Below, piece after piece: positions 4,533 through 62,747 of a stretch of DNA of 64,000 bases (position 1 is its first letter; every line of letters starts with the position of its first letter). The position numbers and the translations under genes were made by a program. Under the pieces are notes generated by a model that had not been told where the DNA came from, searched no databases, and was given only the letters and a program-made list of their open reading frames with translations. Location of the stretch: NCBI GenBank assembly GCA_965202585.1, contig OZ241828.1, positions 79,050,001-79,114,000 of the forward strand, written 5' to 3'. The stretch comes from Thalia democratica. Lineage: Eukaryota.

Positions 4533-4781
4533 ACACTGATCGATGAAAGATCGGCCCAGCAGGGATTGTCGGAATCACGACTGCCCTCGTTCACCTCCGA
4601 AGAGAAGGACATGATAAGGGGATCTTCGGACTTCTTCGGTCTCAACCACTACACCACCAACCTCGCCTACAACACTTTCAAACCCGCCAGCGGTGACGTG
4701 GTTGGTTACTATGACGACAGGGAGTGCGGCAACCAGAACGATTACACGTGGCCCACAGCCAAATCCGTTTGGTTGTTCGAG
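4533..4781 (+). CDS. GH1 beta-glucosidase / lactase-phlorizin-hydrolase-like gene, first exon visible in the window (upstream exons not found here)
   Basis: Acceptor ttttttccaag|ACA and donor GAG|gtaact. Translates TLIDERSAQQGLSESRLPSFTSEEKDMIRGSSDFFGLNHYTT...WLFE; SRLPxFT and DFFGLNHYTT are typical GH1/LPH motifs. GC-rich against an AT-rich background. Confidence 0.92.
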
Positions 4782-5149
4782 GTAACTGTTTTTTTTTATG
4801 GAATTCACAGTAAATGATTTATATATGTTATAATTAATTAACTTATCTTATCTTTAAAAAAAGTACTGCATAGGTATGATTTATAAAAAATTAAACAACC
4901 TTGATAGTTTGATTATTTAATGTTTTTTATATCTGTTCAAACAAACAGCACATATACGCTTCTAAATTTTAAGGAAGTATGTACACTCACATCAATTTTT
5001 AAAACTTTTAGTTAACCTTATGTACATATTTATTTAATCCGATTTTAAAAAAATCAAAAGAGAAAAATATAATTTTGTTTAAAGTTATACCAGAGAACCA
5101 AAACAATCAGATACTATTTAAGAACACGTCTTAAACAATATTCAAAAAG

Positions 5150-5315
5150 GTCCCGTGGGGAGTGAGACGGCTGCTGAACTACATCAAAGAAAAATACAAC
5201 GACCCGGAAATTATAATCACCGAGAACGGAGTTTCTGAAGGGGGAGATTCCCATGAACTGGACGATTATTGGAGGAAGGAGTATTACGTCGGTTACCTCA
5301 ACGAAGTTCTTAAAG
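5150..5315 (+). CDS. GH1 gene exon containing the catalytic nucleophile motif ITENG
   Basis: caaaaag|GTC CCG TGG GGA...AAA G|gttttg; VPWGVRRLLNYIKEKYNDPEIIITENGVS...YLNEVLK; phase 0 in, phase 1 out, consistent with neighbours. Confidence 0.93.
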
Positions 5316-5630
5316 GTTTTGAAATAATTTCTTATTTAGGTATTGTATTAAAATATGTGTTGAAGGCTTTATGACATTTTTTTTCATTTGTTTTAAGTAT
5401 TTACCTTGTATTTAACTTGACAATTATTTATAACTATTTTGTTTATATTGTTCTAACTTAACGAATTGATGAATTTCTTTACTTTGTTTATACAAAATAT
5501 GCTATATTTTACTCTAGTTTGATTTATTTAAAGTTTAAACTCTGACTAGAATCATAATAGGTTTTAAAGAACTCTACAAAAATAAACAATACTAACTACT
5601 TAAACTTTGTTTACGACTAAGAACACATAG

Positions 5631-7476: not shown

Positions 7477-8949
7477 CTTGTTATAAATTTTAGCCTTTCT
7501 ATTGTGATACATACAAAGACTTTTATATACAATATTTTAAATTAACATTGCATTTTACTAAGGAAGGGTGGCGTCGTTTCAGATGTGGTAAAAAATAGAT
7601 CCTTGCGGGCCAAATCATTTTAACCTTATTCTATTTATATAACATTTATAATAATTTCATAACTATTTAGTCGAAAATTGCTCAAAGTTCTTATTTCTTT
7701 AACAAATGAGAAAAAGAATTGAACTTTTTAATAATTTATCAAGTGTAATTTTTAGCTTCATTGAAACTGTACCGAGATCTTTCTTTTATCTATCCACATT
7801 AAGCCTAGAATGTCTAGTGTAAGTATTAGAGTTAACATAGCCAGGTTTACACGTTCTCTGGCTGCAGATTTACTTATTGCGGGCTGTGTTATCTGCAACT
7901 TTGTTAACATTTGCGGGCCTGTCATATATATTATGCAGTACTAGTTTAAAGCTTTAAACGAACACGTTTGAAAAATGATAACTTATATAACATTTTTTAC
8001 GTAAAAGTTGAAAGACTTTAGTTTTTGTTCAGTTTATCGTTTAAATACTACATTTAGGGTTATTTAAATTAAATAAATAAAATACTGAGCTTAGTAAACT
8101 TTCACTAATATGACTAGTTTGAACATTAGAGTTATGTTTTTCAAACATATTTTCAAAGGTATTAAAAATTTACTTTTTACATTCTAAAATTAAGTATTGC
8201 TACAAAATCTAGAGATGCAATATTTAAACTTATCATTTAATATGAGATTACTTAGTAAATAACAAAAAGGTGATTAATTCTTTACTTCTTAAAAATTAGA
8301 AAGTAAAACAAAATAAATAGGATAAAATCTTAAATAGTCTTACTTTGTATATAAGATTCACTCAAGCTTTTTACATCTTTATTTTCATAACATTGTTGTC
8401 TATTTCTTTTCAGCATATTGATAAACTTGTTGATATTAGCATGATATGTACTTGCTTTAAAAAAAAAAAACTAATTCAGAAAATTTCTATCTATTTATTT
8501 TATATGTGTTTCTTTCAAAGACTCATAACTAAAATATTTGTATTTATTTTGTTGTTTTTTCACTGGCTTACTTGTCTAAAATCATAATTGTTTGAATAAT
8601 AAAACCAGTGGTCGCCTTCTTTAGATATCATATCCATCAATAAATAAACAAGTTTCAGCACTCTTTGATAGAAATCAGATTTTAATATCATCAAAAAAAA
8701 GTATAGTTATTTAAAACGTTTACATTCAGTATTAAAATAATATTTTTAATCTAAGTGCGTACTTAACGCAAATGCGTACCTCTTAGTGTCCTTATCGATG
8801 TGCGTAGTGTAGTTGGTAAACAAATAAAGAGTATAAGATAGAAGTTAAGTAATGGTTTAAACAAGTAAATGTTATGAAAGAAGGTAGAAACATTTTTGAC
8901 TCTCTTGAGGTAGCCTTATACAAGTTTTTAAACACCAACATTTGAGCAT

Positions 8950-9585
8950 CATACGCGTATGCATAGTATTACACTATTAAGAGAGTGCTTTCACTCTGAA
9001 AAACGACAAGCTGACGACCTAGTCAGCTTAGGGATTTTATAATGCAAAGGTTATTGAAGAAAAGCCTAGACGTCGAGGCGGGTAGACGTCGTCAAGGCGG
9101 GTTAACTGGCAGTGTTTTTGCAGGCATATAGGTTATAGCTTGATTCGACGTGGCCGTCGACTCAAGCTGGCATCGAAAGAGCGCAGCTAAGCGTTAAAGG
9201 TCGTATAGCAGACCTCATTTAGTAAGTAGCGAGGGAAGGTGAAGCGAGAGCAAGGCAGGTACCGTCCTAAGCAAGCCATTGAGCATAAAAGCCGGTCTCT
9301 CGGAAGGCAGTTTATAAACGAGCTCTGACATGATTCAGCCCAGAAAAAAGTCTGTTTGAGTGCAGTATGATTGATTAAAGCATTTCTAGAGGTGAAGGTT
9401 CGGCCGGGGCGACTGAAGCAGAGTAGGCGAGATACTAGAAAATGCTAAGGCGAATCACTCAAAATGTAACAAGTAAAAAATCGGCTTAATCTCAATTAAG
9501 CTTTGAAAGTCAGAGGTCAGTAGAAGCGAAATGTTTTGCAAGGGAAGCAGGAGCTCCGAGAAAGCAATTGTAATAGAGGGGGGAG
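8950..9585 (+). other. GC-rich, purine-skewed, hairpin-rich non-coding block ending in polypurine tract AGAGGGGGGAG (copy 1)
   Basis: Stem-loops at 8982-8997, 9008-9029, 9137-9168 and 9379-9389/9435-9446; direct repeat tagacgtcg..aggcgggt x2; no ORF conserved across copies; PPT at 9575-9585 immediately followed by TGT. Confidence 0.7.
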
Positions 9586-9646
9586 TGTTTTTTAGAAAAA
9601 GTTGTTGAAAATGAAATGTTGGGTTGTAGGAAGGGTCAGTAGAATG

Positions 9647-9752
9647 TAGAAAGAAAAGTTGAAAAAAATTTGAGCAAAAAAGGCCTCCGAATTCGCCCGC
9701 GGGCGAATTCGGAGGCCTTTTTTGCTCAAATTTTTTTCAACTTTTCTTTCTA
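9647..9752. repeat. 106-bp perfect palindrome with no spacer (copy 1)
   Basis: TAGAAAGAAAAGTTGAAAAAAATTTGAGCAAAAAAGGCCTCCGAATTCGCCCG|CGGGCGAATTCGGAGGCC...TTTCTA; centre 9699/9700; checked base by base. Confidence 0.98.
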
Positions 9753-9762
9753 TGTTTTTTTC

Positions 9763-10000
9763 AAAGGCGTTCGACGAAAGTCGGATGCCTTTTTTTTACC
9801 CAAAGTTTTTTTCAATATTTTTTCAAAGGCGTTCGACGAAAGTCGGATGCCTTTTTTTTACCCAAAATTTTTTTCAATATTTTTCAAAGTCGTTCGACGA
9901 AAGTCGGATGCCTTTTTTTTTTACCCAAAATTTTTTGTTATATTTTTTCATAGGCGTTCGACGAAAGTCGGATGCCTTTTTTTTATCCAAAATTTTTTTT
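9763..10000 (+). repeat. Tandem array of 4 x ~62-bp units, each a 30-nt GAAA-tetraloop hairpin plus oligo-T
   Basis: AAAGGCGTTCGAC-GAAA-GTCGGATGCCTTT starting at 9763, 9825, 9886, 9950; spacers are near-identical T-rich sequence. Confidence 0.96.
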
Positions 10001-10160
10001 AAAGTATACCACAGTAATGACTTTTTTTCGATTATAATGATGTCTTAAGTTTTGAACGGTGCTGCCGAATAGTTAGCATCGTCTTTCTTACAAATTTTTA
10101 ATAAGGTTTGTTGGGGTTTCTAAATTTAATCTATCAATAGCCTTAACAGAAAAATATATT

Positions 10161-10680
10161 TAACTCTTGATACTTATAATAAGTTAAGATATATTCAAAA
10201 CAATGATAGTAGAAAGGGTTATTGTTTTTTGAAACATGTAATATAAAAATATTACAGACTTCAAAACCTTCTGTTATCATTTTCGGTTTTGAACTATAAA
10301 GATAATACTTTTCAACTAATTTTAATATGTTTAGGTATTTCTCTTTTCTATATAAACTATTTTTGAAGTTAAAAAATAAAAATATAATATTTATTGTAAA
10401 AATAAACCTTTAGTTAATTTAATTTCTATTTAATATTTTTATTTTTTTATATTATAACAAGTTAAGATATATTCAAAACTATGATAGTAGAAAGGTATAT
10501 TGTTTTTGAAACATGTAATATAAAAATATTACAGACTTCTAAACCTTCTGTTATCATTTTCGGTTTTGAATTATAAAGATAATACTTTTCACTAATTTTA
10601 ATATGTTAAGGTATTTCTTTTTTCTATATAAACTATTTTTGAAGTTAAAGAATAAAATTATAATATTTATTGTAAAAAAG
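10161..10680. repeat. 278-bp AT-rich tandem repeat, ~2 copies
   Basis: aagttaagatatattcaaaac recurs at 10,181 and 10,459. Confidence 0.92.
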
Positions 10681-12444
10681 ACCCAGAGCTAATTTTATTT
10701 CACAAATATGTGAGATTTTGTTACCAAGTACTGAAATTATTTATAACGGATAATTATAATAGAAAATCTAGAAGCTTAGGCAAGAAATATAGTTTCAAAA
10801 AATAAAACGAAACTAAATACCAAGTAAAAAATAAAATAAATATGAACCAGATACAATGCAGTTTTATTAGTAACATAGACAAAACGTTTCTTTTACATAA
10901 AATAAGTTATTTTCTGATTAGTTTCAAGTTTTAATATTGTTGAAAATAGCGATCAGTCATTTTACGCAATTTAATTATGTTATAGGCAGTATAAATATTT
11001 ACATTTTTCTACTATAAAACACTTCAACTAATTGTTTGCTTTTGCAACATTAGTATGTTGTTGTTTAGAAAATTATTACTGTGTTACTTTAGAAAGTTTA
11101 AAGAAAAGTTAGTTAGAAAGTTTTACTTGTTATACGTTACTTTTCTAGATTAACATTTTACTTTTTAGAATTAATTAAGTTCTACAAAAGTGTAAAACAT
11201 ATAAAACTTTTTATACATACTTTATTTCCTTTTTTCTAACTATTACAAACGGATAGTAATGTAGAACAACGTATTTGTTTTATTTTTAGAATTTTTTAAT
11301 TTCGATTAAACTTCATTCAGGACAAAAATGAGATTTTTGAATAATTTATAAACTAAATTTTACCCAATATTTACAACCTAATCGATACTACAACTAAATT
11401 AGCTTAGTACTGAAAAACATTTTATAACATAACTTTTAAAAACTAACAACTATTGACGTGAATAAACCTTTCAACTACAACTTATATAATTTGCAGTATA
11501 ACTTATATAAATACATGTTTTTATAATTAGTTGCATTAATAAACTCTTTTTATTAATATACGACATGAATGACTTAATTTCTAAACTAAGGCTCGAAACA
11601 ACTAACCTTGTAATGAATTAAAAGTAATTCTATCATAATTATAAGTAATTACATTAATAGTTTACTTTTATTACTATAAAATATCCATTTTTTAACTAAT
11701 TAGTCAACTTGTAGTGTAATTTAAGTAATTTTATTTTAAAGCGTAGTAATAATACTATCAAAAAGTCGAAACTTAAATCAGCGAATACATGTAGAATCAA
11801 GAATAATTAAATGCATTAAAACAATCAATTGCATTTAAAATTGGGATTTTATATTAATGAATAAACTTTAGATAACTACTCAAAATATAAATTTAAGTGT
11901 ATGTCAACAACAGATCCTGGTAAAACAACTTCATTGGAATATAAAATAAATAAAAATCTTACAGTAATCTAACTTTATTGTACCAAAATATGTTTCTGTG
12001 TGTTAACGGATTAACACACTTCAACTGGATTATGTAAAAATTAAATACTGTAATGAAAGAAATGAAAGAATAGAAGCTAAAGTAGGTCTAGATTAAATTA
12101 GACTTAATAATTACAATTAATATAAAGTTTTATAACAGTCGGATTTAACATTAAGTATTTTAGCTATTATTAACTATTAACCTCTAAAAATCTATAGAAA
12201 TTACTTTTATTTTAATGAATACATGTATACACCTACTTTAGCTTCTACTCGTAACTTTATTTAGATTACTGTATAATTTGTAGGCTTTAAATAAACATCG
12301 TAATACTTTTTTTTAAATATATTCTGTGAGAAGCATGAACTTTATTATTACAGTTTTAGATAAAAAATAGAACTATAGTTACACACAATCAATCTGTCAT
12401 ACTAGTTGTAATTTAATTTAGTAATTAATTAATTGTTTTTTAAT

Positions 12445-13340
12445 AGAACTATGTAACTGCAAAAACAAAAAACATCTTCTAGTTATGAACAAATGTAAAT
12501 CCATAATTTAATCTACAAAGCAATTGCCTCATCTGAGAAAAATTAAAATATGTCATTTATTGGATCCACTCGAAGACTTTTCAAGAACAGATTCTACGAA
12601 AGTCGAACATAGAGCATCATTTCCTAAACCAAGCAAGAAAAAGCCCTTCAACTGCCAAACTCGCCAACTACATATGAAAATTGTATGAAAAAGACGAAAA
12701 ATACACAATTAACTGGAAATGACTTAGACAAATCAACAGTATATTCAAACCAAACTTCAGTGCTCATTATGTAACCTACAAAGACTATACATAGCAAGTG
12801 CTAAATAATAATAATGAACTGGTTACACAGTGCCCTCATTACCCAAGGGAATATTTTTAGTTGATTCTTAATCGCATTAACTAAGTGCATTTTATTCTAT
12901 TTAATTAGTTGCTTCGTTATATTTATGTTTCAATTGGGTATATATGTTCGTTTTTAGATATACAACCTTTTCGTAAAAGACTATTTTTGGTTTTTAAAAT
13001 CCCCTATAAATCCTAATGTTTACAATTTTCAAAGCTTACTATGTAAAAAATATTGTTTTAATCTTGTACAAAACTAATTTTTTTTATAATGTACTTAGAT
13101 GATGTATAGTTAACAGAAGACAACAACTAAACTTACCTATATTTCGTTTTATTTTAATTTTTGTTAACTGCATGTTAATGGGCAGTCATATTTAAAACTT
13201 AAAATTATTTGTACGGGTGTATTATTTATAATTGCGTTATAATAATTCATGGCTATGCATTTTTTGTTTTTAAGCTTTTGTTTGCGTCTGACGAATTGCT
13301 CTGCAGAGAAACGGCGTAACGCAATAAGTTAAACAATAAA
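12445..13340 (+). mobile_element. 3' remnant of the Penelope-like element (about 2 kb deleted relative to unit 2 copies)
   Basis: From agaactatgtaactgc onward it matches 35,740 onward (Cys-rich linker, GIY-YIG relic, 3' region with hammerhead motif). Confidence 0.85.
13282..13324 (+). ncRNA. Minimal type I hammerhead ribozyme motif (best-preserved copy)
   Basis: Stem I TTGCGT/ACGCAA; core CTGACGA; stem II (T)TGC-tct-GCA(G) with A.A at 10.1/11.1; GAAA; short stem III AC-ggc-GT; predicted cleavage after GUA at 13,318. Confidence 0.72.
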
Positions 13341-14196
13341 TTAGTATATTATTATATCAAATTTAAAAACAAGTTTTAGTAATAAGTAATAAGTTTTCAA
13401 ATAGTTCTATGCTTTGTGTACATCTAAAAGCGTGCTGTTAAATTTTTTTAGTTATAACACAGAATAGGAAAAACAATTCATAACTTTTTTCAAGTACTTA
13501 TTTTCGTCAAAAAATGTTTTATATTTTTTTATTTTAACTTGCACTAAACAGTACGTTAAAGTTTAAATGTTTGTAAAAATATTCTATGTGCTCTTTTAAC
13601 TAGTAAAAAGTTAAATTGTTCAGCTTAAACTATACAAACAGCATACGATTATAAAGTATATACTTTCTTCGATATCCTTAATATTAACGCCTTTTAAAAA
13701 CATCTTAAAAACATTAAATGTCCAAAAAATTGCATTGAATATTGGGCAAGCAGTTTTATTATTTAAAAACCATTATAATGTACGTGTCGGATTTGCACGT
13801 TGCATCTTTTATTTCAGAAATTTATTATGGACTCTAAAAAAATAAAGCGTTTCATTTTCAAAATCCTTTACTACAGGGTTTTAGCAGCATTTATATTAAA
13901 TAAATATAAAAACCTATTAATTTTTATAACCATTGATTTTTTAAATATCTAAACAAAACATAATCTTTGACAATTTAATCGAATCACGGAATTTTTTTTT
14001 AAACTTAAAGGGCCACAACTCAAAAAGTATCTTTACATTAAAAATGCGTATGTGAGCTTTTTAATACCAAAAAAACTTTTTTTTTATTAAGTATTTGTTG
14101 AGATATGGATAAAATAAGTTTTGTAATATAGTAATTTTAAAATTTATATTAATAATTTTTTCTAAAATTAAAAAAAAAAATTCCAGGCATTTCTAA

Positions 14197-14565
14197 GACC
14201 AAGGGTCGGCAAATTGCGGCCGCAAGCAAATGTAGCCAACTAAACTAAACTATACTTTACGTTGATATTTTGTAGGATATTCAGTGTATTATGGTTAAAC
14301 CATGTTTAAAAGATTTCCATAAGTTTATTAAATTTAAGGTTTAGACTTAAAAACTTGGATAAGATTGATTAGAGTAGTGGTTTTTCCTTAAATGGCAATC
14401 TTAAATTTAGTCCAAAAAATATGTAGAGTTTTAACAGGCATTCCGTGTGTAGGTAAAAGTCATTTATAAGGACAAAATTAATGATACAAAACTTTTTTGT
14501 GTCTGACTAAAGCTAAAGCCAATACAATATTAAAGTACCACTAAAACTAAAACTGCGGCCCGCAA
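14197..14565. mobile_element. hAT-like MITE relic (copy at ~46,196-46,565; related gcgggcc motifs at ~7,600-7,920)
   Basis: ccaagggtcggcaaattgcggccgc resembles the CAGGGGTCGGCAAACTGCGGCCCGC end of hAT MITEs; internal aaactgcggcccgc. Confidence 0.33.
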
Positions 14566-15583
14566 AGATTTTAAACATTTAACTACTATAAGTTGAAAAC
14601 ATATTCTTAAAAGCGAAATGGTAATTTTACAAGCATTGATATAAAAATCTACAACCATAATAAAAAAAAAAGAGTATAGCTTGTTTATTAAAATGAATTA
14701 ACTTTTTTGGTTGAATCTTAGTTTAAGGCTAGAAACTGTGTTAAGTAGTATAACAACATTGTAAAGATATAGTAAATCTACGTTATTTTGTTTTTTAATT
14801 TAAAAAAGTTTTATGATGAAAAAAGTCTACATATATATGGTATATTTTTCGTGCCAAATTTAAACTTTACTACTTAAAATTATTTTTTTTTTAAATTCCA
14901 GGACTTTTAGTAATTTTCGTTCAAAATTCCACATATTTCTGAAGATTTCTCAAATTCAAGGTTTTTAAAGGATTCAAGGTTAAGTGGCCATCCTGCTATA
15001 TGTAAACAAACACTAGTTGAGAATATATAATAAAAACGAAAATTCTTTTTTATACAGGTTGAACTGTATCAGTGAAACACATTTTGTAAATGTTTTAATA
15101 ATGTTGAAATTCGATACAATAATTTAGATACTTAAACAGTTGTAACAGCGAAAATGCATACGACATTTGGTTAAGGAAAATAAAATTGAGTAACAGGGAT
15201 GCTGCTTTTTGAGTCAAAAAATTGTCCTGAGTGACCTTAAAGTGGGTAGGTGTCAAATTCGCACGAGCGGACAAACTTTTCATGAGGCTAAAACAAACGA
15301 AGGGAATAAACTGCACGAAAGCACTTTTGCACGAGGGGACGTAATTCCATAAATAGACATTTTTTCAGTTGAATTTTTCATTTGTTTATTTTTTATAACT
15401 TAACTTTTCTTTTAATTTTTACTATCACTGTTACCCCTAACCTTTACCATCGATCTGTAGCTTTCTTTTTTCTTCTTCTTAATTAATTTTTTTTTATTCA
15501 TTCATTTTTATTGTTTTTTGTTTAATAATTTTTTTTAGTATGAAATTTATCAAATTGAGTTGTTAAAGCAAACAATTATTTAC

Positions 15584-15793
15584 CTGACAAATATCCTTCA
15601 GATCGTTCAGCTGATCCACGATATCACTCCTCATCGTGTTTTGCTTGCCCTGCTCATCTTGATTTCGTTCAGCTTCCTCGCTGCTTCCACCTGGTTGGCG
15701 TCTGTTCCCTTCTCGAGTGAACTTCTTCTCGGGTTGCTTCACCTCGCCCTTCGCCGTCACCCGCGTCTAAACTTCATCCTTTGCTGCCTTCAC
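15584..15793 (-). pseudogene. Orphan 210-nt exon (phase 0-0), copy with in-frame TAG
   Basis: accag|GTG AAG GCA...TGT CAG|gtaaat; GC-rich; codon 9 is TAG where the paralogue has TGG. Also at 47,583-47,792. Confidence 0.7.
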
Positions 15794-17791
15794 CTGGTGT
15801 TTGAATTTATAATAAAATTTAAGAATTTTTGAAAGTATTATAGCTGCAAAGGTTTTAAGTTAGATCAATTAATTTCTATAGGCGTAGACTTCATCCTGTA
15901 GTGTAGCCAAAAATGTGTATTTGCTATTTTGAAATGCGTAAAATGACTGTTTATGCACGGTCTCAAAATAAAGTATTATTTATAATTATTACTTTGGGCT
16001 TCTTGTCTCTTTTCTTTTTCAAAAATTAAGTTTTATTGTACTGAAATCCCGAAATAATTAATTTAAATTCAACAAGAAAGCACAACATAGTTCGTATAAA
16101 CTCATGGTCTAATTAAATCTTAAAGGCGAGTGAATACATCAGAACACACTTTCTTCAGCAGCTTTACATTCAAAATCATTTAGTATGAATGATTGTGCTG
16201 TGAATTGTTTTAAAAAGAAGCTGTTATAAAAGTTTTTGTTTGAAGTACAGTTGTTTTTTTTTGGTGCTATCAGTCTTAATTTGTAAAGAGTAAGAAAAAA
16301 GATACGATTTACGAGAAATTTCGTGCTTACAATAGATGTTTTAGGGTTTGTGAATATTAGTGAAAAAAACTCAAGACACAATTTACGGACTATTTGAAAC
16401 TTAAACTAGATATTCTAGGATTTAAACCGAAAATTTGATAAAATGGAAAGTGATATAAACTCTTCGGGAAATAACTATAAAATGACACAAGAATTTTACA
16501 TTACACATTCTGGAGTTTTAAAGAAAAAAAAGTCTTAAGTAGAATTTACCAGATATTTAAAAATTACATTAGAAATCATTGGCTTGGCAATTTTAAAAGC
16601 TTACACCATACACCAGATATTTTCGGTATAAATATTATAACTAAAAACAAGTCGAGTTTTAAACATAAATTGTATACCTTAAGTTAAAGTGGCATTTTTT
16701 ATAAAAGAATATTGAATATAAAACTTTTAAGAATTATACATTAAACAACCTAACAAAAATACATAAACTAAAAAGCAGAATTTTAAAATTATAAGTACAA
16801 CAATTGCTAGAATACCTACACTAATACAATTTTACAAACAAAACAGAAAAAAGATTGTTAAACCAAACTTCCGTCTGTAATATACCACAAAAATTAAGTA
16901 GATAAATCTATCTTAAGTATAAAATCAAATTCTACATAATTAATTTCAAATTAACAAGAATCTAAATAACTGGCTAAAAAAATTACAAATTTAAACCGTG
17001 CTATAGACTTCTTAAGCTCGAAATGGTAAAATATTTACCAAGCATTGCCGAAAACGAATTAATAGAAGCATTAAAACTTGCAAAAAAACCTTACTGAAAA
17101 TATACAACTAAGTTAAGTTTGTTAAACATTATTGTGAAAAATAATTATAGTCTATTGTAACACGACCTGTAAAAAAAACAAATTCAGATAACCTTTTCAA
17201 TATAACAAGGTTGCCTTAGATCGAGCGGATAATTCTTAGCTAAAACCGATTCAAAAATATGTATCTAAAGACTTAAAAGACTTTAATTTATTGCGAAAAT
17301 TCAATTAGACCTTAAAAAGTGTAAAGTGAAAAGGCAAAACTTTATCAAAAATAAAATCAGATTAATGCATTCTGTGGTGATGACTAACTTTCTTATTAAA
17401 AGCGTGTTTATATTAATTTCCTGACTTTTTTTACCATCATTATTTCCTGAATTTCGTCTTTTTTAATCGCTTTTGTTTGGATTTCGTTAATTTTGGCATT
17501 TTTAAACCTTTTTTTGGACTTTAGTTTTTGTTTTGGCAATCTTAATACAAGCTTTAATTCCTACAATGTTGTGCTAAAGTCCACAATTTATTATACTTTT
17601 ATTTATCAAACGAAACAAGTTAAAAAAAATTTTATCGGCTTTGGTCTTTATAGGGATGACCGCTTAAGAACTTAAGATGCAAGATTAGCAAAAAAATTGC
17701 TCACACTGCCAGCCTGACGAATACCCTTCAGTTCGTTCAGATGATCCACGATACGAAAACTATTAAATAGTTAGAGCAAACAATTATTTAC

Positions 17792-18001
17792 CTGACAAAT
17801 ATCCTTCAGTTCGTTTAGCTGATCTACGATATTACTCCTCATCGTGTTTTGCTTGCCCTGCTCATCTTGATTTCGTTCAGCTTCCTCGCTGCTTCCACCT
17901 GGTAGGCGTCTGTTCCCTTCTCGAGAGAACTTCTTTTCGGGCTGCTTCACCTCGCCCTTCGCCGTCACCCGCGACCAAACTTCATCATTCGCTGCCTTCA
18001 C
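17792..18001 (-). pseudogene. Orphan 210-nt exon, open copy; charged, possibly helical, family not recognised
   Basis: accag|VKAANDEVWSRVTAKGEVKQPEKK...DQLNELKDICQ|gtaaat; no partner exons forming an intact gene. Also at 49,791-50,000. Confidence 0.65.
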
Positions 18002-19105
18002 CTGGTGTTTGAATTTATAATAAAATGTATGAACTTTTAAAAGTGTTTTAGCTGCAAAGGTTTTAATTTAGATCAATTAATTTCTATAGGCGTAGACTTC
18101 ATCCTGTAGTGTAGCCATAAAATATGTATTTGCTATTTTGTAATGCGTAAAATGTCATTTTATGCCTTCTTGAAACACAATTATGACATAATAAGTATAT
18201 TAGTTTATATATTTAGAATATACTGGTCATTAATATAATTTGTATTAGCTATAAATGGAACTGTTTTATTATATCAAAACTATTTGTAACACCAGGTTAT
18301 ATCAAAAAATTAATTAGTTACAAAATAATTGTTGTTCAAAGTCCTTTTTAGTTATAGTTTGCTAAATGTTTGTTATGAACTTTAATAACAAACGCATAAC
18401 AATACAATTAAAACAATGATTATTTTAAAGTTGAATAATCTTTAAACAAATGAAAAATAAAATTTTTTTACTATTATTTTTTTAATGCCACTACCACGTT
18501 ACTTGTCCATTAACTTACATATCCAATATATATTATTATTTTAAACCTTTCCATATAAATATAGTTTTAAGATAAAAATAATTAGCTTAGTTAGTTTTGT
18601 TATCTACAGTATTACCTTAATTATATGATTTTTACAGATTGAAAACCAAAGTAGTTTCTAAACAACAGTAATTTTTTGATATATTTCTAGACATGTAAAT
18701 TTACAAAGAAGATAAAACTGCTTGTAGATTTAAATTTAATTTAAATTCATACTACTTATTGAAACATAATAAAAGACTACATTAATCATAATTGTAGGAA
18801 TTTGAACTGATATGTACTTCATTTCATTAGTGAATGTAAGTAAGAACTCGATAAATAAAATAAATTTTACGACAAGCTGAATTAATGAGTTGCCAGTTTT
18901 AAAGCAACAAATTTTTCTATGCTTATATAATAATCTACTTTTATACAAACAAAAAATTGGTGCAAATTGTTAATATAATATACCAACTTGTATTTTTACA
19001 AACAAATAAATGTATTGATACTTACAAATAACAAAAACCACTTGCTATTTAGTTTACTTTATAATAACCTTATAAAGTATTCAATAAAAAAAAGAAACAG
19101 CAAAC

Positions 19106-19284
19106 CTTCGTCGCCAATATCAGAGTCTTAATCACTCGAAGACGGCCAGTCATGAAATTGCTGCCAGTACTTACTTCTGCACCTACTAGCTGGATGGCTT
19201 CTTAACTGGTTCGTTTTCGTCGCTCGAATCGTCAGTTGATTCCTTTTATCGATGAAGAGCTGGCAGTTGCTACCTTCTTGGTTG
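19106..19284 (-). pseudogene. Decayed 179-nt exon with Ser/Asp/Glu and Lys/Pro/Ala tracts
   Basis: tatatag|CA ACC AAG AAG GTA GCA...GAC GAA G|gtttg; pieces ATKKVATASSS, ESTDDSSDENEPVKKP, SSSD.DSDIGDE broken by stops and frameshifts. Also at 51,105-51,283. Confidence 0.55.
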
Positions 19285-20884
19285 CTATATAATATAATTG
19301 ATTCTTAATTTGGCCTTTATCACAACTGTTATTTTGCTTTTTACTTGTGGACCAAACGATTTTATTTCTGTGGCAATAAATATATTCAACTAAAATTAAT
19401 TTCTACACATTTCTTTTCAGGAGACCTTTCTGATTAAAAACAAGGGGTGCACGACTATTCAAATTTCAATTATTAAAATTTCTAAAAAGGTTTAAAGGGC
19501 AACAATTAAAAAAATAATGTTTTTAAGAAAAATATGAACAAGACATTTAAGTCTTATTAATATCTACAAGTCATTTTACCCTTTTTTGCAAAACTTTAAA
19601 TGTTTTTTGAAATACGGCTAACTTAAGTTTTAAAATTTACAAATTTATAGTAACTATTTAATATCTCAAAAGACTTTTCAAACTTTACAAACAAGATTAA
19701 ACAGCTTATTTATTTTAATAAGACCAACATACAGATTTTTATTTAATTTAAATATTTTTTACTTATTGAGCCATATTAATTGTCTTAATTTTACTTATTG
19801 TCTCTTAAATAACTATTTTAAGAATTTGACTTTAAACTTGAACTCTTATGTAACTAAAAACCAGAAACTTTTATTATTCAAAGTTACTGCACATAAAACA
19901 AAGCTATTTTAATTTGTATGTATAAATATCGAAATATTTAATAAGTTAAGAAGAGAATTTCCAAAGTTCTTTAGTAGTACAACAACAAAAAAAATTACTT
20001 AAACTATATGCAGTAACTTTTCCAAAGTCAAATATTTTATTGTAGATAAGACTTCATACTCACTAAATGTTTTGAGTAAAACATTATAAGAGATTTCAAA
20101 ATATCAAAAAATTATCTAGCATGTTGTTGCACCAATATAAAGCTGAAATTATATAGTTAGCCTTACATTCATTCATATTTATATTCTATGTCAGTTTTTT
20201 CCAGAAGTGTTTTAATTAATGAAAATGCCAAAAAATGCATAACACACTTTATAGCCTTTAGCAATTACGAAGTATACAATATAATTAATAATAATATATA
20301 TGTATCACTAAACAAAAAACTGTTTTTTCGCTTAATGTTCAATTATGGTAGGAATGAGCTTAATACATAAAACTTAAAGCGATGTGTTGTTAAACAAAAA
20401 CCATTGGATATAAGTTTTGTTGGTTTATATCAAATAAATCTTATATGTTTATGTATTTAAATAGCTAAGCTTGTTTACAAAAAAATATCTTTTTAGACTT
20501 TTAAAAACATTGATTTTTAATCTAAAATTATAGTTATAATTAATCTAATATGTTAACGAAGCTAATAATTAACTACTATCTATAACAAAGCTAACTATAA
20601 AGTTTCAGTTTGATATTGGTGTGACATCATGCTACGTATTTACAAAAATATATATATTATTAGAGAAATTCAACTTTAGATGATAGTTTTAACAGACCAT
20701 ATATTTAATTGATAAATTAGGATTTTTAAAAATGTACCTTAAGAAAAAATTATTATTTTATGTAGCTAAGAAATATTAAATCTACTTATGAAATGAGATT
20801 AAAAAAATTTTCTAGTAATTTTAAAAACCTCTTTGGACCAAACCTTAAAAATGTTTTAAACTTAATATAAAGGCTCTGTAGGTA

Positions 20885-23695
20885 AAAATATTTACATAAT
20901 AATGAAATTGTTTAAATATTGTTATAATACATAAATTACACGACTCTGAACTGTAGGAACTTGAAATGTTGTGGACTTCATTTAATCAGTGGATGTAAAT
21001 AAAATTCGATATGGAAATGAAACAATGAAAATGAATTGACACTACAGTAGCGTTTAAAGACTTGAATATATTAAAATTAAAAAAAAAAATTAATTAATAA
21101 ATAATAATATTTATAACTCTAATGATAAGCTGAAATAATGAGTTGCAAGTAATTTAAAGTAATGATTTTTCTTAATGGTTATAAAGTTATCTACTTTAGA
21201 TAGCCAACATTTTTGGGTTCACCTTGGTTTTAACAAGTTGATCTTATTTGATAAAGTTTTATCTGAACTATCAGAAATTTTTGAGCGCTTGAAAAAATTT
21301 GAAGTAATTTTTGAGATATGAGCGATCAAAGTTGGTGACCTCAATAGGTTCCAATGGAAAGGGCAAACTAAAAAAACTAAAAAAAAACATTTCACTAATA
21401 ATATATCTCCTCCTTTATTATCTGAGCAATCTTTTACAATTTTACACAGAAAGTCTATTATTAAATTTTAAAAAGATTGACTGCAGGAATTTGTTTTAAT
21501 TTTGAAATATAAAACTTTTATTGATTAAAAACCACCTACTTTTTTGCTTTTTTTGTTTAAAATTTTAGTTTATAATATTTTTAAAATTGCAATGCTAAAA
21601 AACTATATAAAAAACGTTTCCTGAAAGTCTGAGGTCTCTTATTAAACAAATGAAGGAGAAGATAGATTTTTAGTGATTTTTTTAATTTTACAGAAACTAA
21701 CAGTAAAAAACCTGCAAATTTTTTTATAAAAGTTACAATATCTCAAAAGTAAAATGAGATTTTCTTTGTTCTACAAAAAATGGCTTATAGTATGGACTTA
21801 ATGCTTACAATAAAGATCCAATGTTATTTTTATTTAAAAAAATGTTAGACCTCTATTCCCTTATGTGACTTGAGTATCTGAAACTCTATTAAAATATCTT
21901 AGATCTTTAATTTGAGGGGCTATTTTAATATTTTAAGGATTAGTCATTAGTAGAGGGTTACCAAAGTTTTTCAGTAAACTATTCAAGGTTTTTAAAAATT
22001 TCTTCTAGGTTTTAAAATAAAAATTTTCGGGTACATTTTTGAATAACATCAAATTAGAGATAAGAAATTGTCTTAATTAGTATAAAAACACTAAAAAGAT
22101 ATTGTAAAGCTAGTTTAAATGTGTTTTGTAACAAAATAAAAAATTTACTTTCAAAAAACTTAATCTTCATGACAGATTTTTTGTATCAAATCAAAATTCC
22201 AATACTTTACATGTTGAATATTCAAAGAATTGTTATTTAGAATCATAATAGTTTAAGTATATATTCTATAAACATTACTATACAAATTATTTAAAATTAA
22301 AATTTTAATTACTTTAAATTAGTAACTACAAAACTCCCAACCATTAGAATAATAGTATCATTAATACTAAGCATTTAACAACAATCTTGCAAAGTATTGC
22401 TTGTTTAAATAAAGTATATTTAAATCACATATAAAACTGTTTGCATACAATTTTTTTTAAATGCAGCTTTATGAGATACCAATAAATAGTGTAAAATTTT
22501 CAAGGTAAGATCTTCTTTTCACAAAAATCAGCCTCTGATTTAAATAAAAAATACTTAAATAGTCTTAGTTTTTTTATTCAAAGAAAAAAAAAAAACAAGC
22601 CTGATTTCAGCATATAAGCTGTTTTATTTTTACTAATCTGAGTCTCAAACATAACTCTCTAGCCTAAGTTAGTCTTAAGAATCTTCCTAAAACCTAAAAT
22701 GAGTTCTTGTAAAAGGGTGGCCACACTTTGAGTCACAAAAACAACTGTCCTGATTGGCTTAAAACTGTCCTGATTCATCCTGAGTTTTTTCCAAACCTTC
22801 ATACAAAAACTAATAAGAATTTAAAATTAATAAAAAACAAGTTCTTGAAAAAAATTGTTATAAAATAGCATCATTTTGAAAATAAATCTCTATTAAACCT
22901 AGAAAAATGGTCTGGCCTTAGATTATTTAAAAATAAAACCTAAAATTATCCTTATTTTTTAATTAAGAAACAGAGTCAGCCTAACTTTAAAAATCAAATT
23001 CAAAAACCTGAGCTACCCTGAGTAATTCTGAGAATTTAAAATTCTTCAAAATATCTGATTGAGTGGCAATATTATAATTTTCTCAAATTTGTGTTACTTA
23101 CATTAGAACACTATACTTTAATTGTAAACACAATATACAATATTATAAAAATTTTAACAACTCACATTAGGTTTATAAAAATGATTATAGTTAGCTTAGT
23201 TACTTACATATAAAGCATAACTCTTACCTTGAGGAGAACTTCTTTTTGATTGTTTATCTTATCATTGTGGCTCAAAAGGTTTTACAGAAAATATTAGAGC
23301 ATTGCGCGCGAAAGTAAGTATTAAGTAATTTTTTTAAATAGAAAACCAGGGACAAAATCGTTTAATAAATACCAATGTTTTTTAAAATGTTTCTAATTTA
23401 ACTCACAACTTACAAGTTAATAAAAATTTATACTTTTCATACTATATATTTTTTTAAAGTTTTCAACAATAGTTTTCACAAGTTGTTACAACAATTAAAA
23501 CCATACATTCTCTAATAACGAAGACTCAATTTGTAGTTTACTGTTAAACAAATACTACGAAAAAAAGTTAAGTACGAATAGCTGTGTACTTAAACATCAC
23601 ATTTTTATACTCGCTTTCTTAATTATTTTCAATCCGTAAACTAATAATTAATTTTAGTAATCTCTAAATTAAATTCTTTTTTAAAACCCTAAATA
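20885..23695 (+). repeat. Copy of the 1-2,815 segment inside array unit 1
   Basis: Direct colinear match to 1-2,815; essentially identical to 52,884-55,694. Confidence 0.92.
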
Positions 23696-26600
23696 AATTC
23701 GGAATAAAATAAATATTTTATACACTTCGTTTATAAATTAACGCAACGAACTATTACAATTATATTTATATTTTGTCTTAAAGTGTCTAATTGTTTTAAA
23801 TTACTTAGTCTATATCGTTTTTTCTATAGGTTTTTGTTTATAAATACAGTAAAATACTTTTTAAAAAGCTTTAATCAGTTTTCAACGTGCTAATAAAATT
23901 AAAAAATTATAATTACACAAAACAAAATTTATATAACATTGGTTGTACTTTATTTTTTTTACTTTAACTAACATTTTGCTGTTTCTTGAACTTTTTTATT
24001 TACTCAATACTATAATAAATAAACTTTAGATTAATAACAAATTCATATTGCAGTATATTACAGTCGTTTTTGTTTTTTTGTTCTAAAACATAAAATATAT
24101 GCTTGAATTTTATTTTTTAGGGGTTTCAGTTAGTCTGAGAAATTCAATTAGTATAATTTTGGGTTGAATTTAAAAAAACTGAAAAGATAATTAGTTTTAG
24201 TTTTTATAATATTATTACTCCATATATCTAGTTCGACCAGATTCTGACCCACTGTGTAATAATTGGTCAAAAAAATTTTAACCTAAAACTTGTAGTACTT
24301 GTAAAATCATTAAAGTATAATTATTACCATCGTTTTTTTATCATAATAAGTTGTAGTCCTCAATGCTTTGCTTCAAAGTTTATATGATAGTTTGTAAAAT
24401 ATAGCTCAATGTATTTATACAAATTTTAATAAAACTTGTATAACAGCTTAAGTTTATTTTATTGATGTGAAATGCCAGAGCTTTAGTAAAGTTTTAGTAT
24501 GAGACTAATTTCTAATTAAGCTTTATGTTTTATATGATTTACACAGTTTAATTTAAGCTATAAAATTAAGACTGAGTTTTTTAAATACTACTTTTAAACA
24601 ATTAACTTTTATAGAAAAAAAAGTTATTTTTAAGCATATTAATAGAAACTAATTAATATAAGTAATTGAACCTATCGATTTCAATGGTTCTTGACTATTA
24701 TTTTTTTTATTAATCCTAAACCGATTTTTGTAGAATTTTATATTTAATCAGTTAAATTGAAGTTTATTTACTGAAAACAATTTTAAACGTGGCAAATTAT
24801 TTAAGTGAAATTATTAGTACAAACTTGTAAAATAAGATAAAAACAGTCCTAAGAGTATAATTACGACTATAAATATTTGAAATTTTAAAAGAGCGAATAA
24901 GATAATGATTTGGAACAAAGTTTTATAAAAGTACACGCTTTAGACAATTTTTGTACTTTTAAAACTTAAACTTTATAATAAAAAAGAAAATTTATACACA
25001 AACTCATAACAAAATTTTTGATAATTTTACAAAGCATAGTTTTAATACATAATAAACATATATAACTATATTATATACTGGAAAACTAAACTGAAACGCA
25101 TTGGATAAGAAGCAAACTATTTAAAGCTGACTGTTTCGTAAAACTTTTGCTTTGCATTTTATCAGAAAACCAATTTGTAAAACAATAATACTATGTAAAC
25201 ATATGGCAATTAAAAAATTCCAATTGTTCAGATTTTGATAGTCAATCCCACAAGGTTTGTTGTATATATAAGTAAGCTGCAAACTATCCTAACTATAAAT
25301 AACGTAGTATATTTTTCTTCAATATTTCTTTTCTTTTAGTGTTTTAGTTCTAATGATTTGTAAGCAGTTAGTAAACAAACATCTTGCTGAAAATACAAAC
25401 AACTAAATATGCTAAAAGAAATACAATCCAAAAACTTTCATTTCTAACATGATACAGAGTTAACTCATTTGTTATAACTAAAATTTTTTCAATTGTTCAT
25501 TTTACATACTGTGATTGAAACGGTTAAGTGATGTTTTGATTTATTTCATCCACATAAACACAGCTTACCAGTTAGTATACTTTTTAAAACATATTAATCT
25601 TTGTTGAAGAACTACTTAGAAGAGGAGTTGTAAAAATGCGCCCTGCGAAAGATGATTGTACGGTTTTATTAATTTCATTATAAGTGCTCGCAAGCTAGTA
25701 AAACTTTCAAAAACTTTGGATTTTCAAGGTTTAGTATGAAGAGTTAAAAAAATAGTTCAACTTACGGGATGATTAACACTTACTAAAACTTGTAATACTA
25801 AGTTTCAAACGAGATACTTTACGATTTGTCATGAATGATTTAACAAAAAGTCTTTTTATAACTAAACTAAAAACTGTCTCCCGAGAACATTTCAATGTCG
25901 AAATTTTTCCTGCGACTATCAAGTCCCTGCTGACTCCTAATTTAAACGATATTTAATATAAAATTTCTAAGTTTTTTTTTTATCCTTCTATGTGTATTAA
26001 TTTAAAATATATATTTGATTACTTACAAAATTATAGAATCTGGTTTAAATTTAATTCATAACTCAGAAAATTTTAAACAGGGTTTTAAATATATTTTTTT
26101 ATTGATACTTAGATGGTAAGATTTGCTTTAAATAACCATAGATTTCAAAACGTTCAATATGAATTTACTAAATTATATTTTAATGCTGTTAAATAACTCT
26201 CAGACTGCAAGTACTTTAGTTTAAAAATATGCACGAAAAATATATACTAAGATTAACTTGTGTAGATAGTTTTGTATAAATTTAAAATGAATTTACACTA
26301 AATATAACTATAACTAAAATAAATCACTATTTTCACCTTGAAGGCTGTTAAATTTTTGGCTTTTAGTCACTATTTTATTCTTATACTTTTGGTCGGTTTA
26401 CTTATCGTGTAGTTAAAAACAATGACAACTCAGTATAAATTTTGCAAACACAGCTTGCAAACTAAAAAGAAAAGTAACAAGAGTTACAAAAAGACTTTTC
26501 AGGTTCAAAATAAAATTAAAACAAAAGCCTGCACTGCATCTAAAGAGGTGTTGTAATATTACATTTAATAAATATAGGTCGATAAAAAATGCAGTATAAT

Positions 26601-27619
26601 TATGAAGACAAAACAATTTTTTTTAATTTTAGTCATATGCTATATCTTTTGTTTAAGTTCAGAGTACATATGTTTTTTTAATTTTCTAGTAGTAAAAACT
26701 TAAAACTTACTATTAAATTTAGCTTACTTTGAAAATATTAACATGCCTAACTTATTTCGATAGAAAAAAAATTTGAAACCTAGTTTAAGGTAATTGTGTC
26801 AAAAAAATTAAGTAAGATGTTAAAACTACTTACTTTTTTATATAGTTTTTAGGCCATTAATGACTGGAATTTACAAAGTATATTTTAATGTAGTGTAAAG
26901 GAAGAATAAGCATGATTTCTTTTGAGATGGTGTAAAAATCTAAGGCTAAAAGTTTTTCAGGTCAACTATGATTGTCTCAGGTGTTTAATTTTAAGTAGCT
27001 AAGGCTAAAATTTTGAATTGTTAAAATTCACGCTAGTTGTTTCATATGTCTTAAAATCTAATTCAATAATTTGATAAGATAATTTGATGCTTATTTAAAT
27101 TCCTGTAGTTTAAAAAAAAAACAGATTTTACCCTAAAAAAAAAACTTATCAAAAAAAAAAAAAATCAATTAAAAAAAATTAGATAGAATAAATTAAACTA
27201 TAAATTATTATTTTCAAATATTTTTAATTCTATTAATAACAAACCGATCATTCGTAGTATTTAAGAACCATTTATTACGTAAAGTTTAATTTTTATTAAA
27301 CAGGAACAAAAAACTATTATATTTGATTTTAATCAGTTGTCTCCTGTAAAAAACCTTATTTTTTATTCATAAGTATTAGAAAATAGTTAAATTTTTAAAA
27401 CCTAATTAAGTTTTGTTTAAAAAAAAAATAAAACTTTAAAAACATCGCTATACTCGTATTATCAACTTAAAAGTGAACATTACATTTAAAACTATTAAGT
27501 TTATAAAATCAGCTATCATATTAAAATTACACATTTTTTTGCAATTAAAAATATACGTTCTAAACCTAAAAAAGTAAATTCACAACGACAATGATTTTGA
27601 GAAATAAAAACTTGTTTTC

Positions 27620-29083
27620 TTAGTTTTTTTGTTGTGAATTGACTTTTTTACACCAACTAGAAAGTTTTCTTTTAAACGAAGGTACCTTTACACAACAATA
27701 GTTTCTATAATCATATGTTTCGTCAATATCTTCGTATTTCCACAGACAATCTTCGTCAAGATCGTAGCAAAATACAGAATCTTCGTGCGGAAACAGATAA
27801 ATTTTCCTTTTAAAGCACAACACTTTGTTAATAGGAAAATCATCGTCGTTGGTGAAGAAAACAAATTCTTTAAAAGTGGTGTCGTACACCTCGCACGGTA
27901 TCGTGCAATCTCCAACTACAAACATTTTGTTGGTGGCAACAATCAGGCTGTGATCACTCCTTGCGTGTATCATGTCGGGCATTGCCGACCATTCATCGCC
28001 GAAAACGTCGTACGCCTCAACGCTTTTCAGCATGCGACCCGAAACACCACCCGAAACACCACCCGAAACCACCACCTTTCCCCGAAAAACCACGCAGGCG
28101 GAACGGCGTCTCGCGCTTTCCATTGCGCGCACTTCTTTGAACCCGTCGTCGTTGAAATAGCAGCAGGAGTTGGTGGCGTTTCCAAGCCAGCTGCCTCCTC
28201 CGACCACGAAGATTCTATCAATAAAGGAGCAAGCGCACGTTCCGATCCGGCCGTCGATCATGTCGAAGTTCAGCTCGCTCCACGTCCCGGTCGCGCGCGA
28301 GTACTTGTGAATTGACGTCGTGCGCCCGGAGCTGTCCTCACCGCCGATCAAGTAAACGTCGCCTTTCAAATACACGGCGATTGAACCGCACCGTCCCGCA
28401 ATCATCGAAGGCAGCCTTTTTGTTTTGTGCAAGTTGTGACGGCATTCGATTCGGTACGCGCACCTGAGAACTTCGTGACCGTTGCGTTTGTAACCTCCGC
28501 ACATTATGACGTCAAACTGGTCGTGGTCGCAACACCTTCTCGCGCGGTAACAGCTTGATTTTGTTAGAAGTACTTTTCTTCCGTTTACCTCTTTCAACGT
28601 TTCAACGAGCTCTTTAGTCACACCTAACGGTGACAGGCTGTTTACAAAATGCTGCATTTCGTATTGAGACAGTAGAGTCAGACGAACCTTGTGTAACAAT
28701 TGTTCTGCGAACTTGCTGCGTTCTTCATTGTTGTGTTTCAACCAAACTATTAACGAATTGGATACTTCAATTTCTGAGTGAATATTCAAGTTAGAACTTC
28801 CGAGTATTTTAACTAGCATATGGAAGTCTAGATTTAAAAAGTTTTCTGTTTCAACTACACTAGGGAAACAACTATCAATAAGGCGCAATGCGAGCTTTGC
28901 AAGGTACTGCAAGTCGTAAAATTTTGCTAAAGTGAAAACCAAAGTGACATTTTGAACATCAATATGTTTAATATGATCGTTTATTTCGTCCAAAATATCT
29001 TCTTCTAGCAATAACTTTTTAACTCTATATTATGAAACAATTTTTCTTTGTTTGATACTGGATTCATCTACAAAATATACCAT
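27620..29083 (-). CDS. BACK + Kelch-repeat protein (KLHL-like), copy 1; in-frame TAA at 29,032-29,030 suggests pseudogene or a downstream start
   Basis: BACK-like FLNLDFHMLVKILGSSNLNIHSEIEVSNSLIVWLKHN..ER...LLHKVRL; Kelch GG/Y/W motifs (VYLIGGED, IFVVGGG, VVVSGG, SVEAYDVFGDEWSAMPDM); 463 codons open from 29,011. Confidence 0.88.
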
Positions 29084-30052
29084 ATATAAAAGTTTTAAAA
29101 GACTAGTTTGAACATCTGAGTTATGTTTTTTAAACATATTTTAAAAGCTATTAAAACTTTACTTTTTTGAAGTCTACAAACATTCTAAATTTAAGTATTG
29201 CTACAAAATCTAGAGATGCAATATTTAAACTTATCGTTAAAAATGATATTACTTAGTAAATAACAAAAAGATGATTAATTCTTTACTTCTAAAAAACTAG
29301 AAACTAAAACAAAATAAATAGGATAAAATCTTAAATACTCTTACTTTGTTTGTAAGATTCACTCAAACTTTTTGCATCTTTATTTTCAGAAAATTGTTGT
29401 CTATTTCTTTTGAACATGTTGATAAACTTGTTGATAATAGCATGATATGTACTAGCTTAAAAAAAATAAAAGGTTAATTCAGAAAATATCTATCTGTTTA
29501 TTTTATATGTGTTTCTTTTAAAGACTCAAAACTTAAATATTTGTATTTATTTTGTTGTTTTTTCACTGGCTTAGTTGTCTGAAATCAAAATTATTTAAAT
29601 ACTAAAACCAGGGGTCGCCTTCTTTAGATATCATATCCTTCAATAAATAAATAAGTTTCAGCACTCTTTAATAGAAATGAGATATATATATATCATCAAT
29701 ATAAATACATTTTATTACTTGTATACTACAAATTATTAGAAACATACAAAAACTTGTAATATGTTAAACTGTAAGTTAGTGTGTAGAAAAGTTAAGACAA
29801 AGAGTATAGTTATACAAAACGTTTACATTCAGTATTTAAATAATATTTTTAATCTAAGTGCGTGCTTAACGCAAGTGCGTACCTCTTAGTGTCCTTATCG
29901 ATGTGCGTAGTGTAGTTGGTAAACAAATAAAGAGTATAAGATAGAAGTTAAGTAAAGGTATAAAAAAGTAAATGTTATGAAAGAAGATTGAAACATTTTT
30001 GACTCTCTTGAGGTAGCTTAATACAAGTTTTTAAACACCAACATTTGAGCAT

Positions 30053-30749: not shown

Positions 30750-30857
30750 ATAGAAAGAAAAGTTGAAAAAAATTTGAGCAAAAAAGGCCTCCGAATTCGC
30801 CCGCGGGCGAATTCGGAGGCCTTTTTTGCTCAAATTTTTTTCAACTTTTCTTTCTAT
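30750..30857. repeat. Perfect palindrome (copy 2, 108 bp)
   Basis: Centre 30803/30804; the 106-bp core is identical to copy 1. Confidence 0.98.
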
Positions 30858-30866
30858 GTTTTTTTC

Positions 30867-31040
30867 AAAGGCGTTCGACGAAAGTCGGACGCCTTTTTTT
30901 TACCCAAAATTTTTTTCAATATTTTTTCAAAGGCGTTCGACGAAAGTCGGATGCCTTTTTTTTTACCCAAACTTTTTTTCAATACTTTTCAAAGGCGTTC
31001 GACGAAAGTCGGATGCCTTTTTTTTTACCCAAAATGTTTT
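30867..31040 (+). repeat. Tandem array of 3 x 62-bp hairpin units
   Basis: Hairpins start at 30867, 30929, 30991; the first has GGACGCC (G.U pair replaced by G-C). Confidence 0.96.
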
Positions 31041-31203
31041 TGAAGTATAACTCAGTAATGACTTTTTTTCGATTATAATGATGTGTTAAGTTTTGAACGG
31101 TGCTGCCGAAAGGTTAGCATCGTCTTTTTTTTTCAAATTTTTAATAAGGTTTGTTAGGGTTTCTAATTTTAAGCTATCAATAGCCTTAACAGAAAAATAT
31201 ATT

Positions 31204-62737: not shown

Positions 62738-62747
62738 TGTTTTTTTC

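Follow-up and report, generated by a model that had tools for sequence, protein, structure and literature searches.

Terminator-like GAAA hairpins in Thalia democratica appear to form a copy-number-variable minisatellite derived from an adjacent palindrome, with a conserved core

Intrinsic (Rho-independent) terminators of bacteria consist of a G+C-rich stem capped by a GNRA-type loop, with a T run immediately behind the stem on the same strand. Termination by Pol III relies on a run of at least 4-5 T and needs no hairpin. The spacers of rDNA contain Pol I terminator/enhancer repeats, among them the TTF-I-bound Sal-box arrays and, in Xenopus, repeats of 60/81 bp. Bacterial REP/BIME elements are clustered, intergenic imperfect palindromes of 20-40 nt, one strand of which is better paired, and for long palindromes the deletion of the centre ("revision") is a stabilising outcome. 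Long palindromes threaten genome stability (PMC3315005, PMC4255720); palindromic AT-rich repeats are described behind recurrent human translocations (PMC4255720), and SbcCD processes palindromes in E. coli (PMC3315005).

Here we analyzed a window (the whole stretch of DNA under study, 64 kb, C4:79,050,001-79,114,000) from a chromosome-scale contig of the salp T. democratica, whose genome comprises 800 Mb in 1,833 contigs. The window has a G+C content of about 25% and few long ORFs, and is made up of large segmental duplications (12445-29699 and 44458-61682 are 98.6% identical). It contains three hairpin arrays, and every array sits in a roughly 3-kb non-coding module, always abutting the right arm of a palindrome, with the order GC-richer block, 106-bp palindrome, array, conserved segment of ~160 bp and 277/278-bp tandem repeat. 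The features, in window coordinates, are the following.

8750-9646, no strand: GC-richer, CpG-rich, ORF-free block of the module, with several short local palindromes
9647-9752, no strand: perfect palindrome of 106 bp without a spacer, immediately left of array 1; its right arm served as template for the unit
9756-9999, + strand: array copy 1, 4 stem-loops (9763-9792, 9825-9854, 9886-9915, 9950-9979)
10003-10160, no strand: post-array segment of the module, conserved, about 87% identical between clusters
10175-10723, no strand: 277/278-bp tandem repeat, behind the array in every module copy
30750-30857, no strand: same palindrome with 54-nt arms, left of array 2
30860-31041, + strand: array copy 2, 3 stem-loops (30867-30896 with pair 7 as G-C, 30929-30958, 30991-31020)
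59619-61070, - strand: BACK-Kelch ORF of 483 aa, adjoining module copy 3 on its left; a functional link is not implied
62632-62737, no strand: same palindrome, left of array 3
62741-63046, + strand: array copy 3, 5 units, equal to copy 1 with its first unit duplicated

The first-pass annotation had described a terminator-like hairpin array in three copies of 4, 3 and 5 units, and this anatomy was borne out. We found 12 matches to the core motif in the 64-kb window, all on the + strand, where shuffled sequence was expected to give 0, and they fell into the claimed numbers of 4 units (9769-9976), 3 units (30873-31017) and 5 units (62754-63023). TRF returned a period of 62 bp with 3.9, 2.9 and 4.9 copies in the three arrays, and the start-to-start spacing that we measured, 61-64 bp, agreed with the period given before. 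The unit core is 24 nt long, with GAAA at its centre and two G.T positions, and the T run said to follow the stem is present behind every core as T8-T10. As had also been stated, the 30-nt stem-loop has to admit pair 7 as G.T and pair 9 as T.G to reach 13 pairs, and on the - strand these two pairs are mismatches, so that the fold splits into two short helices of 6 and 4 pairs; the T to C change noted in the unit at 30867-30896 is there and turns pair 7 into G-C. The 13-bp stem itself stood in 8 of the 12 window units and failed in 4, each of which carries one pair-breaking transversion (G to T at pair 5 in the units at 9886 and 62933, A to T at pair 2 in those at 9950 and 62997); therefore, the 13-pair stem describes the consensus and not every unit. 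A coding reading of the array was rejected: ORFs of 89-146 aa cross it merely since T-rich frames lack stops, and the unit lengths of 61-64 are not multiples of three.

One reading of this anatomy is that the units act as hairpins of a + strand RNA, either terminating transcription in series (at the T runs in the manner of Pol III, or assisted by the hairpins) or serving as an RNA array that binds protein. The + strand gives a clean 13-pair, GAAA-capped fold with an RNA energy of -20.0 kcal/mol, against -12.0 kcal/mol for the - strand (as DNA, -10.1 and -7.6), every stem is followed by its 8-10 T, and a terminator consensus scan of 8000-12000 scored 5 sites where 1.0 was expected, 4 of them being array units. 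The units thus share the G+C-rich stem, the GNRA-type loop and the T run on the same strand with intrinsic terminators, but they lie in tandem on a eukaryotic nuclear chromosome with no fixed upstream gene, nuclear polymerases do not use this mechanism, and, on an animal chromosome whose + strand neighbours vary, the units do not close a transcription unit of a bacterial-type RNA polymerase. With Pol III terminators they share one-strand runs of 8-10 T, which exceed the 4-5 T of that class, but the array has no Pol III gene upstream, runs of 5-6 T in the upstream GC block would stop Pol III earlier, and one T run would be enough, making a series unnecessary. Searching the whole 64-kb window, we found no Rfam family at the gathering score and no upstream tRNA, 5S, U6, 7SK, SINE or other family for such an RNA, and ARAGORN found no tRNA; an Rfam search of 8400-10300 by E-value threshold gave only generic, sub-threshold hairpin matches on the palindrome. 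The GC-rich block (8750-9646) held no known RNA family in Rfam, and a structured RNA gene within it gained no support, as there is no net covariation for a long-range fold (in RNAalifold the covariation term was +3.93, a penalty, and double changes occurred in 4 of 185 pairs). The same block has local palindromes, for example at 9137-9168, some of them with a GTCGAC-like core.

The Pol I repeats of rDNA spacers resemble the array in their short conserved core, T-rich flanks, tandem arrangement at tens of bp and variable copy number, and protein binding of the core is known for the rDNA system; unlike them, the array has no rRNA gene in the 64-kb window and no sequence likeness to those repeats. 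REP/BIME elements share the clustering of short imperfect palindromes and the better pairing on one strand, but they are bacterial, alternate in orientation and are tied to the RAYT transposase, none of which was seen in the salp array. Outside the salp, an exact-pattern scan of a metagenome collection gave one match only, in the GC-rich bacterial contig OCZU010130197.1 (L061, 455-487), where the same 24-nt hairpin (C variant) stands just behind an ORF in the manner of a terminator-like stem at a gene end, and this is best read as chance or convergence; exact-pattern scans of viral and prokaryote genome collections gave zero matches. Likenesses of the motif to a B box, a heat-shock element and an IRF site were rejected as poor matches.

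The module is present on at least five chromosomes. Across the genome we counted 309 core matches at up to 2 mismatches (284 forward, 25 reverse), in clusters on C4 (78.53-79.20 Mb, with a spacing of about 30 kb), C6, C1, C2 and C5, with further matches on unplaced contigs whose sequence duplicates C4. In a search of the same genome with a covariance model built on the unit (R1), each of the best 150 candidates, which were the ones scored, was near-consensus. The stretch is contained in 3 sequencing runs of 2 studies, with a recorded type of DNA or unknown and none of RNA, which shows that more than one data set contains the sequence. The + strand upstream neighbours of the module vary among copies, which also speaks against a + strand transcript ending in the array. 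Upstream of module copy 1 are glycosyl hydrolase family 1 exons (4566-4817 and 5162-5374, + strand, profile positions 270-336 and 340-393), while module copies 2 and 3 have a Kelch ORF, on the opposite strand, in that place, the one left of copy 2 (27620-29083) being a 97.5% identical copy of the BACK-Kelch ORF left of copy 3; the solo module copies on C5 and C6 are flanked by same-strand Kelch-coding fragments. A fixed link of the module to a Kelch gene was nevertheless ruled out, since both orientation and neighbour vary among copies. The Kelch fragments that flank the solo copies at C5:13.52 Mb (L054-L056) and C6:11.87 Mb (L051-L053) share a duplicated stretch of roughly 40 nt, which looks like a duplication breakpoint inside a Kelch gene, and an exact-protein look-up of the Kelch ORF in other assemblies has no match on record.

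The dispersal of the module over at least five chromosomes is what a mobile element would give, with the units as subterminal repeats bound by a transposase or as stacked hairpin stop signals at the end of a rolling-circle (Helitron-like) element; hairpins on one strand are what HUH-type enzymes use, and ends made of a palindrome plus subrepeats are known in foldback-type elements. However, the module has no sharp common boundary, its left edge being ragged among copies (8112, 8230, 8620, 8696, 8722, 8823 and 9034), we found no terminal inverted repeats, LTRs or target duplications in it, and its apparent right edge coincides with the end of an unrelated, abundant MITE, which suggests that it spread mostly by segmental duplication and not as a clean mobile element; most copies were indeed spread through a roughly 30-kb segmental duplication. 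Further, no CTRR (CTAA, CTAG, CTGA or CTGG) of a Helitron 3' end occurs anywhere in the unit, to the left of the palindrome stands the GC block and not the mirrored, inverted array of a foldback-type element, and the window has no transposase-sized ORF. We therefore consider a mobile-element end very unlikely.

Other repeats accompany the module. The terminal inverted repeat of a MITE-like family lies at 12068-12090 (-) and 12228-12250 (+) and again near 33389, 33550, 37726, 37887, 42081 and 42242, and its 23-nt end motif has 932 genome matches with an even strand split. A 4.36-kb tandem repeat at 32604-45692 has three copies that are 92-95% identical, with strong GC and AT skew. In the C1 copies (L043/L044, about 2395-2420, C1:93.25-93.28 Mb), a 19-nt piece directly after the last unit matches the start of the GC block (window 8898-8917).

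The palindrome, rather than a gene, is the constant partner of the array: in every array sampled, the array starts directly behind the right arm of the palindrome and in the same orientation. When we set the two side by side, the 3' arm, T run and spacer of the unit matched the inner right arm, T run and outer right arm of the palindrome, and in C1 an alignment of the unit 3' arm and spacer with the palindrome right arm and junction gave 58 matches (shuffle mean 31, maximum 53). The unit of C1 is 73-74 bp long and still has an 11-nt piece of the arm, which is absent from the units of 61-64 bp in all other clusters, the 62-bp unit being the 73-bp unit minus 11 nt; moreover, an arm change specific to C1 recurs in the spacers of C1. 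These results indicate that the array is a minisatellite grown out of the right arm of the adjacent palindrome, and its units, head to tail and within 10-100 bp, have the form of one. The unit core reads as the core of the palindrome in which 6 nt stand in place of the central 18 nt and a few bases are substituted. We propose that the unit arose as a centre-shortened, imperfect miniature of the palindrome core (an inverted repeat of 24-30 nt around GAAA) joined to the T-rich outer right arm, and that the 61-64-bp unit is the product of an 11-nt loss from the 73-74-bp form. Since the array is built from the T-rich right arm only, the T run and the T-richness of the + strand are inherited, and with an inherited T run the main architectural argument for a terminator falls; the terminator look (stem, GAAA loop and T run on the + strand only) may be a by-product of descent from a palindrome arm.

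The large palindrome itself appears to behave as a DNA structure, as its arms change together in the C1 copy and its centre is a recurrent breakpoint in three kinds of case. Fragments on C2 (C2:18.44 and 18.46 Mb; L045, 2081-2331, and L046) have only the right arm and 3 units, embedded in a TA microsatellite, and start exactly at the centre of the palindrome. One C5 copy of the palindrome lacks the 2 central bp. In a higher-order tandem repeat of 1.93-2.0 kb on C4 (C4:78645150-78656700; L015-L030), made of the palindrome right arm, the array, the 278-bp repeat and a tail, the junction, which carries a 7-nt duplication, connects the equivalent of window position 11613 with a point 7 nt to the left of the centre of the palindrome. 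Breakage at the centre, or no more than 7 nt away from it, is a feature shared with unstable long palindromes, and the repeat core is like a centre-shortened derivative of one; but the shortened derivative was here amplified in tandem and then conserved, which is outside the known picture of palindrome instability.

The number of units is indeed unstable, as claimed: copies 1 and 3 have 4 and 5 units between flanks that are 99.5% identical, and the 30 sampled arrays had 2-8 units each. Gain and loss of units is ordinary minisatellite behaviour, and single units may have been gained or lost via slippage or unequal exchange, which would leave 3, 4 or 5 units in near-identical segmental copies. 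Such instability would also suit a minisatellite without any function, in which the conservation of the core would be apparent only, resulting from mutation-rate differences (a slippery T/A spacer against a complex core), from GC-biased conversion or from the arrays being young. The most degenerate units are at the edges, as in arrays shaped by unequal exchange (8 of the 10 carriers of the C.A break and 8 of the 8 carriers of the A to T change are last units), and the array is without a known motif or a fixed gene partner.

The conservation of the core bears on this directly. We sampled 127 units from 30 arrays, 73 of which had the consensus 30-mer, and compared six lineages (C4, C6, the two solo copies, C5a and C1), with the GC-rich block at 8750-9646 as the neutral yardstick. 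Based on per-array consensus hairpins, 1 of the 30 hairpin columns was variable (3%) against 215 of 814 ungapped columns of the GC block (26%; binomial p = 0.0012); with first units only, 2 of the 30 columns were variable by a hand count (p about 0.007). Within units, we counted 17 cluster-wise events over 27 columns of the core and 61 over 27 columns of the spacer, the spacer changing about 3.6 times as much as the core, and distinct alleles alone, counted by hand from the same table, gave 13 and 35; the low-complexity T/A spacer may mutate faster and inflate this contrast, from which the comparison with the GC block is free. The GAAA loop was intact in 126 of the 127 units, and the central 13 nt of the core were almost invariant. 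The idea of the first-pass annotation that the hairpin matters is supported, since the hairpin evolved at least 3 times slower than its flanks. Substitutions between clusters amounted to 9-13% in the flanks and 2-6% in the palindrome, and the spacer differences that are fixed between clusters lie within 10-25 nt of cores without any change, so the conservation cannot be put down to homogenisation between clusters. Nor is it an effect of low mutation, since the core has four CpGs, normally the fastest-decaying sites. For the functionless minisatellite, then, the core is far steadier than its complex, GC-rich neighbour, its A/T positions are also conserved, which GC-biased conversion leaves unexplained, its CpGs persist, and the 9-13% difference in all flanks between clusters means that the arrays are not young; we regard that reading as unlikely. 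Judged from these alignments, the miniature-palindrome core appears to be under purifying constraint.

A constrained hairpin could be constrained as RNA, and core conservation counts in favour of the + strand RNA hairpins introduced above. The strand-specific G.U pairing that the first-pass annotation relied on did not hold up, however. Transitions at Watson-Crick pairs that are tolerated only on the + strand numbered 7 and those tolerated only on the - strand 4, so that substitutions have no + strand bias; short hairpins of the GC block, tallied by hand from the pair table in the same manner, gave 9 (+) and 7 (-). That two wobbles lie on one strand is uninformative, as an imperfect palindrome gives this by chance about half the time, and so is the G.U to G-C change in the unit at 30867, because any transition at G.T yields a Watson-Crick pair.

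Among 34 distinct units, 97.3% of the cells were paired, with changes on both sides at 1 of the 13 pairs, and a covariation score as high was obtained in 17 of 500 shuffles. Compensation is seen at pair 10, which went from C-G to T-A (U-A in RNA) in two clusters. In C6 the T-A was preceded by a C.A form, a broken state in which the pair persists in 10 units, whereas in C2 it arose through T.G, two paralogues of C2 differing in T-A and T.G, and this U.G intermediate counts in favour of an RNA hairpin. However, pair 10 joins the C of one CpG to the G of the CpG facing it, and plain CpG decay on both strands gives the same double change without selection. Overall, the substitutions give no strand-specific evidence for a folded + strand, and the results neither demonstrate nor favour termination on a + strand RNA; with the varying neighbours, the early T runs, the inherited T run and the C.A-broken units also against them, we consider + strand RNA hairpins unlikely.

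The reading that we prefer, tentatively and as a possibility somewhat short of an even chance, is a copy-number-unstable, palindrome-derived minisatellite whose conserved core is read at the DNA level. From the anatomy, ancestry, copy-number change, constraint and lack of strand bias found here, we infer that something reads the miniature-palindrome core, because a core under purifying constraint implies a reader, most likely at the DNA level. The reader might be the same factor or process that handles the large palindrome, a sequence-specific protein on the duplex inverted repeat, or a process acting on a hairpin extruded from the T-rich strand while it is single-stranded in replication. Against a DNA-level reading, the G.T positions are kept in about 90% of units, which speaks against efficient hairpin-templated correction on this scale and would suit an RNA hairpin, and the + strand fold is clearly the better one. 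Phased duplex binding sites are mildly favoured by the difference between the unit lengths of 62 and 73-74 bp, about one helical turn, although about 3 in 10 random indels would give the same.

Further, we consider a bolder form of this reading, which is distinctly unlikely: the palindrome and its train of miniatures would be one maintained DNA-structure element, recognised by a putative salp factor as a hairpin/cruciform or as duplex at helically phased sites, with the train serving as boundary, origin or recombination organiser of the rapidly turning-over Kelch macro-repeat arrays. If true, it would amount to a hairpin system in the nucleus that selection maintains and that has no described counterpart; in the literature we found no description of this palindrome-derived hairpin element.

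Minisatellites are usually treated as neutral, yet in this salp the hairpin core has hardly changed between chromosomes even though their flanks are 9-13% diverged, and it appears to derive from a palindrome that maintains its own perfect symmetry. Should the constraint be functional, the core would mark a DNA- or RNA-reading activity, as yet undescribed, in a chordate relative, and it offers a compact sequence for pull-down or reporter work. If the constraint is not functional, the array would be a clean example of a terminator look-alike descended from a palindrome arm, and a caution for motif-based terminator calls in eukaryote genomes.
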